This document shows positions 31,164 through 32,300 of a DNA stretch of 64,000 bases, in pieces. Under the pieces are notes generated by a model. That model saw nothing but the letters and a program-made list of their open reading frames with translations, was not told where the DNA came from and did no database searches. Numbering within the stretch: the stretch's first letter is position 1; each line of letters opens with the position of its first letter. Both the position numbers and the translations under genes were made by a program. The stretch spans positions 26,226,001 through 26,290,000 of the forward strand of contig NC_043012.1 of NCBI RefSeq assembly GCF_006345805.1, given 5' to 3'. Origin of the DNA: Octopus sinensis. Taxonomy: Eukaryota.

Positions 31164-31523
31164 TAAGTGGAATTGTATTTAATAACTTACAGTTTTCTAA
31201 ATCGGTAGATAGACGAACTATTAGACATTTTGCTGAGATGTTTTGTCATATCTATCATATTCTGCGTCTGACTGTAACGCCTATGACTTCACTAGATTCA
31301 AGCTGTCTTCACTCAAGTTGGCATTTCTTCTCTTGAAGAGACATCGATGGTTTCGAGAGGGGTGACCAGCATGCATGAGCAACTGCTGGTCTGCTTCAAA
31401 TCAACCTACCTCGCATGGTATACACAGATCGACAGAGGTCCTACGTAATACTACACTAGTATAGTATGTTATTGTGTTTTCACAATAACATACTATAGTT
31501 CTTAAATTTCACAGAAAACGGGA

Positions 31524-31612
31524 GGCTGATTCGCTGGTGTAAAGGTTAACACACTTAGTCGCGTAAAGAAAGAAATGTGGGTTCGACTCCCAGGCGGATA
31601 AGAAAGCCTTTT
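31524..31612 (+). ncRNA. Pol III small RNA gene, vault-RNA-like or tRNA-like (copy 1)
   Basis: A box TGGTGTAAAGG (31535-31545), B box GGTTCGACTCC (31580-31590), 5' GGCT and ATTCGC pair with 3' AGCC and GCGGAT, TTTT terminator; no anticodon arm. Confidence 0.65.
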
Positions 31613-32018
31613 GGAAAACACATAAACACTAAGATATGGCTGACATCAAGGGAAAGACGTAAACATGAAATTTTAATTATGAATCATTATATGTCGTAAA
31701 TATACAAGCCATTACTAACAGTAATATGTCAGTATATTTTTCATTTCCTTAATACGCTCTTTTTAAACTTAGTGGCAGGTGCGCGTTTTTAACATGCCAT
31801 GTTAAAACTTTGACATTAATGGCTTTGCACTGGGGTAACTGCTTCAGTTGCAACTCTCGAAATTCAAGCCACTTACCGGGAATTAAGTAACGTATATATA
31901 TATATATAGTACTTAATGGCTAGTCATATATAATAGCTTTTTTAAATAGGCTTAAAGCGATTACCTTACAGTGACTAAGGAAAGTAGTCTTATAAAGCGG
32001 AATATAATCCCTCGACAC

Positions 32019-32106
32019 AAAAAGTAGGCTTTCCTATCTGCGTGGGAGTCGAACCCACATCTCATTGTTAAGGCAACTGTGTTACATTTACACCAGCGAG
32101 TCTGCC
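32019..32106 (-). ncRNA. Pol III small RNA gene, vault-RNA-like or tRNA-like (copy 2, inverted)
   Basis: GGCAGACTCGCTGGTGTAAATGTAACAC-variable-GTGGGTTCGACTCCCACGCAGATAGGAAAGCCTACTTTTT; shares a ~30-bp upstream flank with copy 1. Confidence 0.65.
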
Positions 32107-32230
32107 CCCGTCTTCCTGTCAAATTTAAGAACTATAATAGTTCGTGTTTTTTTTTATATGTAAACCTTCTATATGCTTTCGGTGCGAATGTTTTTTTTTT
32201 TTTTATACGGCGCCGTTTTTACAATCCTTC

Positions 32231-32300
32231 AACACACTTAGTGGCGTTAACAAAGGGATGTGGGTTCGACTCCACGAGGATAGGAAAGCCTTCCTTTTTT
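32231..32300 (+). pseudogene. 5'-truncated third copy of the vault-like RNA gene
   Basis: AACACACTTAGTGGCG...GTGGGTTCGACTCC-ACGAGGATAGGAAAGCCTTCCTTTTTT; lacks the A box and 5' stem. Confidence 0.65.

Follow-up and report, generated by a model that had tools for sequence, protein, structure and literature searches.

Three related units with Pol III-type anatomy lie within 0.8 kb of one another, in the orientations +, −, +, in the Octopus sinensis window (the whole 64 kb stretch of DNA that was analysed; Table 1). The initial annotation had described two units of 88-89 nt and one truncated copy here, and all three are found where it placed them, with repeats well beyond chance—the T-arm 18-mer ATGTGGGTTCGACTCCCA occurs three times at no more than two mismatches (0.01 expected), the 21-mer TATAGTTCTTAAATTT[CG]ACAG occurs exactly twice (0 expected), the occurrence outside copy 1 being 32136-32116 on the minus strand, and blastn aligns copies 1 and 2 at 81.7% identity over 120 nt (E 7e-24), copies 2 and 3 at 83.6% over 73 nt, and copies 1 and 3 at 85.7% over 63 nt.

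Anatomy and surroundings of the units

The description of these sequences as Pol III-type units also holds, given an internal A box, an internal B box, an oligo-T end, and a common TATA-like element upstream. The A boxes, B boxes, and terminators of copies 1 and 2 are all intact, and the B box is identical in all three copies. Upstream, the TATA-like stretch is identical over 16 nt and identically placed in copies 1 and 2, with TATAGT starting at 31494 and 32136, respectively, in both cases exactly 30 nt before the proposed 5' end (−30). Homology between these two 5' flanks fades upstream of about −43 in the alignment, and beyond that point the two copies share no element, including any block resembling a PSE or CRE. 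On the other side, the 3' flank previously reported as common to copies 2 and 3, a T-run followed by TCGAGGG, is present in both and extends up to 32311; a dispersed SINE starts right after.

Table 1. Positions of the three units, their parts, and neighbouring features in the window
Feature	Position	Strand	Remarks
Copy 1, complete	31524-31612	+	Leader GGCT; tRNA-like core 31528-31601; trailer AGAAAGCC; T4 terminator 31609-31612
Copy 1 A box TGGTGTAAAGG	31535-31545	+	Read from sequence
Copy 1 B box GGTTCGACTCC	31580-31590	+	Read from sequence
Copy 1 upstream segment, common to copies 1 and 2	31494-31523	+	TATA-like TATAGTTCTTAAATTT at −30 to −15, then CACAGAAAACGGGA
Copy 2, complete, more degraded than copy 1	32106-32019	-	T5 run 32023-32019
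Copy 2 upstream segment	32107-32136	-	Identical TATA-like element at −30
Copy 3, 5'-truncated unit	about 32229-32300	+	T6 run 32295-32300; 3' flank including TCGAGGG up to 32311
TCGAGGG after the T-run, copy 2	32015-32009	-	Read from sequence
TCGAGGG after the T-run, copy 3	32302-32308	+	Read from sequence
Palindrome, perfect, 17-bp	31460-31476 / 31481-31497		TTTT loop; read from sequence and self-match
tRNA-derived SINE	32312-32451		A and B boxes readable on the minus strand; adjoins the 3' flank of copy 3
Further copies of this SINE	18017-18154; 39733-39861; 33940-34057; 60066-60193; 37177-37219		Five copies
U6 snRNA copy, full-length	12338-12444	-	105 bits
148-aa ORF	11926-12372	-	Continues from the 3' end of the U6 copy
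ORF with 45-aa block, nearer to copy 1	30672-31163	-	330 bp from copy 1, divergent
ORF with 45-aa block, farther from copy 1	25302-25763	-	
LINE reverse transcriptase	54084-55657	-	RVT_1 and zf-RVT
Tc1/mariner-type fragment	24156-24545	+	HTH_Tnp_Tc3_2, E 1.7e-4

Several other features of the window were recorded alongside the cluster. The U6 snRNA copy is the sole Rfam match in the window at gathering thresholds. It lacks an oligo-T terminator and is preceded by a TA microsatellite in place of a promoter; on both grounds it is probably a pseudogene, and we rejected it as a yardstick for promoter structure. The 148-aa ORF that continues from it has no Pfam match and does not resemble the window's other LINE, and the U6 copy is probably a pseudogene or retrocopy and possibly a chimera with a retroelement. 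Two further ORFs share a 45-aa block (...VY.C.......YIG.S........H...F) at 31% identity (E 2e-07), which we take to resemble GIY-YIG nucleases; neither has a Pfam match or homologues in the protein collection, and the one farther from copy 1 has no tRNA-like unit nearby. Neither the ORF nearer to copy 1 nor an ORF that spans copies 2 and 3 is among recorded proteins. An (IYLS)n microsatellite overruns the N-terminal part of the ORF for the LINE reverse transcriptase. Among named sequences, its closest relative comes from the octopod Argonauta hians (63% identity); two JGI fragments come to 70-73%, and no hit exceeds 73%, a result in keeping with an octopod origin of the DNA but no proof of it. 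Finally, the Tc1/mariner-type helix-turn-helix match is weak and falls below the Pfam cut-off.

Likeness to tRNA genes and to vault RNAs

We searched the whole window against Rfam at gathering scores, and searched more permissively (E<=10) first a 1.2 kb region and then a 106-nt slice for each full copy. In the 1.2 kb and 106-nt searches alike, tRNA (RF00005) was the sole meaningful match to the units, scoring 27.1 bits (copy 1) and 26.6 bits (copy 2), so that neither full copy attains the gathering score of 29 bits taken as the minimum for a functional tRNA; the alignment of copy 2 leaves its acceptor mostly unaligned. ARAGORN called copy 1 as tRNA-Ala(cgc), drawing a cloverleaf in which the acceptor is good, the D stem has 4 bp and a canonical loop, the T arm is canonical, and the anticodon stem has 3 bp plus an A/A mismatch. 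For copy 2, no ARAGORN call was returned, relaxed thresholds included. Both methods place acceptor, D, and T arms in tRNA register together with tRNA-type A and B boxes, and thus describe a tRNA-derived layout; the anticodon arm of a functional tRNA, with 5 bp in the stem, 7 nt in the loop, and an anticodon that can be assigned, is seen in neither copy 1 nor copy 2. The initial annotation had stated that the centre forms no anticodon stem, which the weak, 3-bp anticodon-like stem of copy 1 qualifies.

The resemblance to tRNA genes and pseudogenes extends over nearly the whole unit. The core is 74 nt long and has an acceptor stem; its D stem, of 4 bp, closes a loop of A14/GG/A21 type, and its T arm (GTGGG-TTCGACT-CCCAC) contains a perfect B box. 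A short leader precedes the core, and a trailer of 8-12 nt and an oligo-T (T4-T6) terminator follow it. The A box starts at +12, which is the expected position for a tRNA-type (type 2) Pol III promoter. Because the GGCT leader and the AGAAAGCC-Tn trailer are placed as they are, and the A box stands at +12, the 88-89-nt unit is best read as pre-tRNA-like. Unlike tRNAs, however, the units score below the gathering threshold, have a vestigial or absent anticodon stem, allow no isotype to be assigned, and carry a G/A mismatch at position 1:72. A majority-rule ancestor of the three copies is likewise a marginal tRNA with weak stems, whose anticodon flips between Ala(ggc) and Thr(cgt); as no parent isotype can be named from this ancestor, the unit may have ceased to be a working tRNA before it was duplicated. 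The D arm may resemble that of tRNA-Gln and the anticodon loop that of tRNA-Asn, likenesses on which no conclusion here is based.

The initial annotation had instead proposed that this might be a vault RNA locus. Published descriptions of vault RNAs list boxes A and B, additional elements upstream (a TATA box among them), 5' and 3' ends that pair, little conservation otherwise, and paralogues in clusters (PMC7058938), and the traits that had been listed for the octopus units are thus genuine properties of vault RNAs; the variable middle aside, tRNA genes have every one of these traits too. In the units, A and B boxes and a TATA-like element at −30 are present and shared between copies, and they fit tRNA genes as well. 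More generally, since an A box, a B box, an oligo-T end, a TATA upstream, and pairing of the ends occur in tRNA genes and vault RNAs alike, they are insufficient alone to identify a vault RNA. The search results point the other way. The check that had been set beforehand was a Vault match combined with no good tRNA score, and the reverse was seen—tRNA scores of 27.1 and 26.6 bits, with copy 1 called by ARAGORN, and no match to Vault (RF00006) in the whole window at gathering scores or at E<=10 in the 1.2 kb region or the 106-nt slices. With respect to Y RNA and sbRNA, there was similarly no Y_RNA match at E<=10 in the 1.2 kb region or the 106-nt slices.

That these are true cephalopod vault RNA genes, with A and B boxes, upstream elements, a 5'/3' panhandle, and association with the MVP particle, is therefore in our view highly improbable. 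The units do agree with descriptions of vault RNAs in their general architecture, being Pol III-type, about 90 nt long, and clustered as paralogues, with A and B boxes inside and a TATA-like element upstream (PMC7058938), and the 5' GGC... of copy 1 pairs with its ...GCC 3' end. It is also conceivable that the Rfam model misses distant vault RNAs, since vault RNAs are described as notoriously poorly conserved (PMC2770079). Against this, the same 106-nt slices that gave no Vault match at E<=10 scored about 27 bits as tRNA, the only family matched; the body of the unit has the full layout of a tRNA cloverleaf at exact tRNA length, with a pre-tRNA-like leader and trailer, rather than merely two promoter boxes; the terminal stem is not conserved between copies; the two full copies lack a PSE- or CRE-like block beyond about −43; and every feature adduced in support is also found in ordinary tRNA genes. 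The identification as vault RNA is accordingly not upheld. A mollusc vault RNA would be interesting rather than unprecedented, since lophotrochozoan homologs have already been described in two lineages (PMC2770079, citing Mosig et al. 2009).

Divergence and probable decay among the copies

Minimum free energy (MFE) folds of the full copies were no more stable than dinucleotide shuffles, with z-scores of +0.31 and −0.32. The terminal panhandle reported previously is recovered in the MFE fold of copy 1 and in that fold only, and it is not conserved: substitutions between copies break its pairs, and the z-scores lie near 0. Counting pairs over the cloverleaf plus terminal stem, we found that four of four genuine stem substitutions are disruptive (columns 8:86, 11:79, 13:77, and 58:74) and that none among the copies is compensatory or pair-preserving; a fifth apparent break, in the D stem, was dismissed as an alignment artefact. 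The terminal and acceptor stem of copy 2 carries three substitutions, each of which breaks a pair and none of which is compensated.

Each copy also has defects of its own. Copy 1 has a G/G mismatch in the T stem. Copy 2, whose T arm is perfect, keeps four of seven acceptor pairs, has two to three mismatches in the acceptor and terminal stems, has lost the GG of the D loop, and has 3 nt deleted on the 5' side of the anticodon stem. Copy 3 is truncated at its 5' end, and so is without the A box and the 5' strand of the acceptor, and has a 1-nt deletion in the T stem.

The centre of the unit, which the initial annotation had singled out as variable, is nominally more diverged than the rest. The difference amounts to 20-33% between copies in a gap-aware alignment (33% against about 14% elsewhere), which falls short of the wholesale divergence that had been suggested, and the contrast does not reach significance (p 0.052 in a post hoc Fisher test, 0.21 for the scan statistic, and 0.45 for the longest identical run) in tests that span 2.7 copies and have low power. 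For this reason we rejected the pattern of conserved boxes plus a variable centre as a signal of selection. The divergence is compatible with a uniform level of about 17%. The observed/expected ratio of CpG is about 1 everywhere and so carries no information here. Nothing indicates selection on RNA structure or function.

Origin of the cluster and competing explanations

The earlier claim that the copies arose by duplication at the DNA level, and not by retroposition, is borne out by a 5' flank that is common to about −43 and a 3' flank that is common past the terminator. With flanks shared on both sides, a retroposed Pol III transcript is ruled out as the source. The alternating +, −, + orientation, the unit of about 150 bp, and the 17-bp palindrome speak instead for local inverted duplication or for template switching; the right arm of the palindrome coincides with the start of the copy 1 unit, running into the TATA element, and marks a local inverted duplication. 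Matches to miRNA models in this region, including MIR869, mir-308, mir-630, and mir-3912, were set aside as artefacts of the inverted repeat formed by copies 2 and 3, of the palindrome, and of microsatellites, the palindrome giving rise to those for mir-308, mir-630, and mir-3912.

No copies beyond the three were found in the 64 kb window, either by sensitive blastn or with an nhmmer profile built from a manual alignment of the units, which scored the known copies at 126, 121, and 71 bits (the last being copy 3) and its next best hit at 9 bits. The unit profile likewise found no copy in 22 kb of Argonauta hians, and pattern scans found no related sequence in metagenome contigs or in prokaryotic genome contigs. 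In A. hians, L001 15139-15179 has a 9-bit likeness to the part comprising T arm and trailer (GTGTTCGAATCCCACGAGG...CCTTTCTTTC); lacking both an A box and a tRNA call, this stretch probably represents an unrelated fragment of tRNA origin.

The SINE adjoining copy 3 served as an internal control for what a genuine SINE looks like in this genome. Like the units, this and other tRNA-derived SINEs of cephalopods carry a Pol III promoter with A and B boxes that stem from a tRNA. Unlike them, it recurs, has a body unrelated to tRNA, and is without a shared upstream flank, whereas the units show no such recurrence, terminate in a T-run at about 88 nt, and do share their upstream flank. On the evidence of 64 kb of octopus and 22 kb of A. 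hians sequence without extra copies, and of the shared upstream flank, the units do not look like tRNA-derived SINEs.

We consider the cluster to be a small, local group of decaying tRNA-derived Pol III units, probably tRNA pseudogenes, of which two are possibly still transcribed; we put the probability of this reading at roughly 0.6. Three DNA-level duplicates, since diverged, would all descend from a single tRNA-derived Pol III unit about 150 bp long. The layout of a unit runs from the TATA-like element at −30 through 4 nt of leader and about 74 nt of tRNA-like body to a trailer of 8-12 nt, after which an oligo-T terminator follows; in the body, the D arm (A box) and the T arm (B box) are canonical and an acceptor stem is present, with the anticodon arm only vestigial. 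On this reading, TFIIIC would bind the A and B boxes, TFIIIB would be positioned over the TATA-like element, and Pol III could still make pre-tRNA-like, non-decoding RNAs of about 85-90 nt from copies 1 and 2; copy 3 should be silent because it has no A box. The copies would have been produced by local inverted duplication or template switching and then have decayed neutrally. A counterpoint is that the duplicated segment matches the limits from promoter to terminator closely, and a constrained gene family would show the same.

That counterpoint bears on the alternative that the units encode a functional, lineage-specific, tRNA-derived Pol III non-coding RNA, in which an extended terminal stem is kept together with the elbow (D arm and T arm), the centre is free to vary, and transcription depends on the TATA element at −30. 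The confinement of the duplicated segment to promoter and gene is what would be expected of it, as are the intact boxes and terminators of copies 1 and 2 with their TATA-like element identical over 16 nt, an ancestor that by reconstruction was already without a proper anticodon arm, and a centre nominally more diverged than the remainder. We nevertheless regard it as unlikely, since that contrast lacks significance (p 0.05 post hoc; scan p 0.21), the stems show disruptive substitutions throughout with neither covariation nor excess stability, copy 2 has lost much of its terminal stem, copy 3 is truncated, and neither the pattern scans of metagenome and prokaryotic genome contigs nor the profile search of 22 kb of A. 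hians yielded a relative. The initial annotation had offered another unannotated Pol III RNA family as its second choice, and promoter-like anatomy is the only evidence that prefers such a family to tRNA pseudogenes. A more specific form of the idea—octopod-specific, non-decoding, tRNA-derived RNAs with a TATA element at −30, an elbow, and an extended terminal stem, which might act as the RNA component of an RNP and conceivably be the vault-associated RNA of cephalopods—strikes us as decidedly unlikely.

It is also quite improbable that the units are low-copy fragments of a mobile element with a tRNA-like Pol III promoter, whether an atypical SINE, a MITE, or a Helenus-type TRIM reduced to solo LTRs, inserted repeatedly at one spot. 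Transposable elements crowd the window and the boundaries of the units are sharp, and the LTRs of Helenus elements, including those of molluscs (bivalves), do contain tRNA-like sequences that conserve the promoter boxes but have a structure unsuited to working as a tRNA (PMC10886601). A Helenus TRIM (TRIMp3), however, consists of two direct LTRs with a tRNA-like part, separated by a PBS and a PPT and flanked by target-site duplications of 4-5 bp (PMC10886601), whereas the octopus units have no LTR pair, PBS, PPT, TG..CA termini, terminal inverted repeats, target-site duplications, or A-rich tail, stand in mixed orientation, and share only 63 nt between copies 1 and 3. The T-run directly after the tRNA-like part would stop a Pol III transcript of any longer element, the shared upstream flank is incompatible with SINE retroposition, and the cluster of 0.8 kb accounts for every copy in 64 kb of octopus sequence, with none in 22 kb of A. 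hians. Lacking the structural hallmarks, Helenus-type TRIM, MITE, and SINE were all rejected.

The locus is thus real as an observation and ordinary in kind. Animal genomes, and the repeat-rich ones of cephalopods in particular, commonly contain tRNA-derived pseudogenes and Pol III units that resemble tRNAs, and as it stands the cluster is of little import, with signs of decay rather than of constraint. It is useful as a caution against calling vault RNAs from promoter anatomy. If the units were found to be expressed and conserved across octopods, they would become candidates for a lineage-specific tRNA-like RNA and a lead towards the vault RNAs of protostomes.
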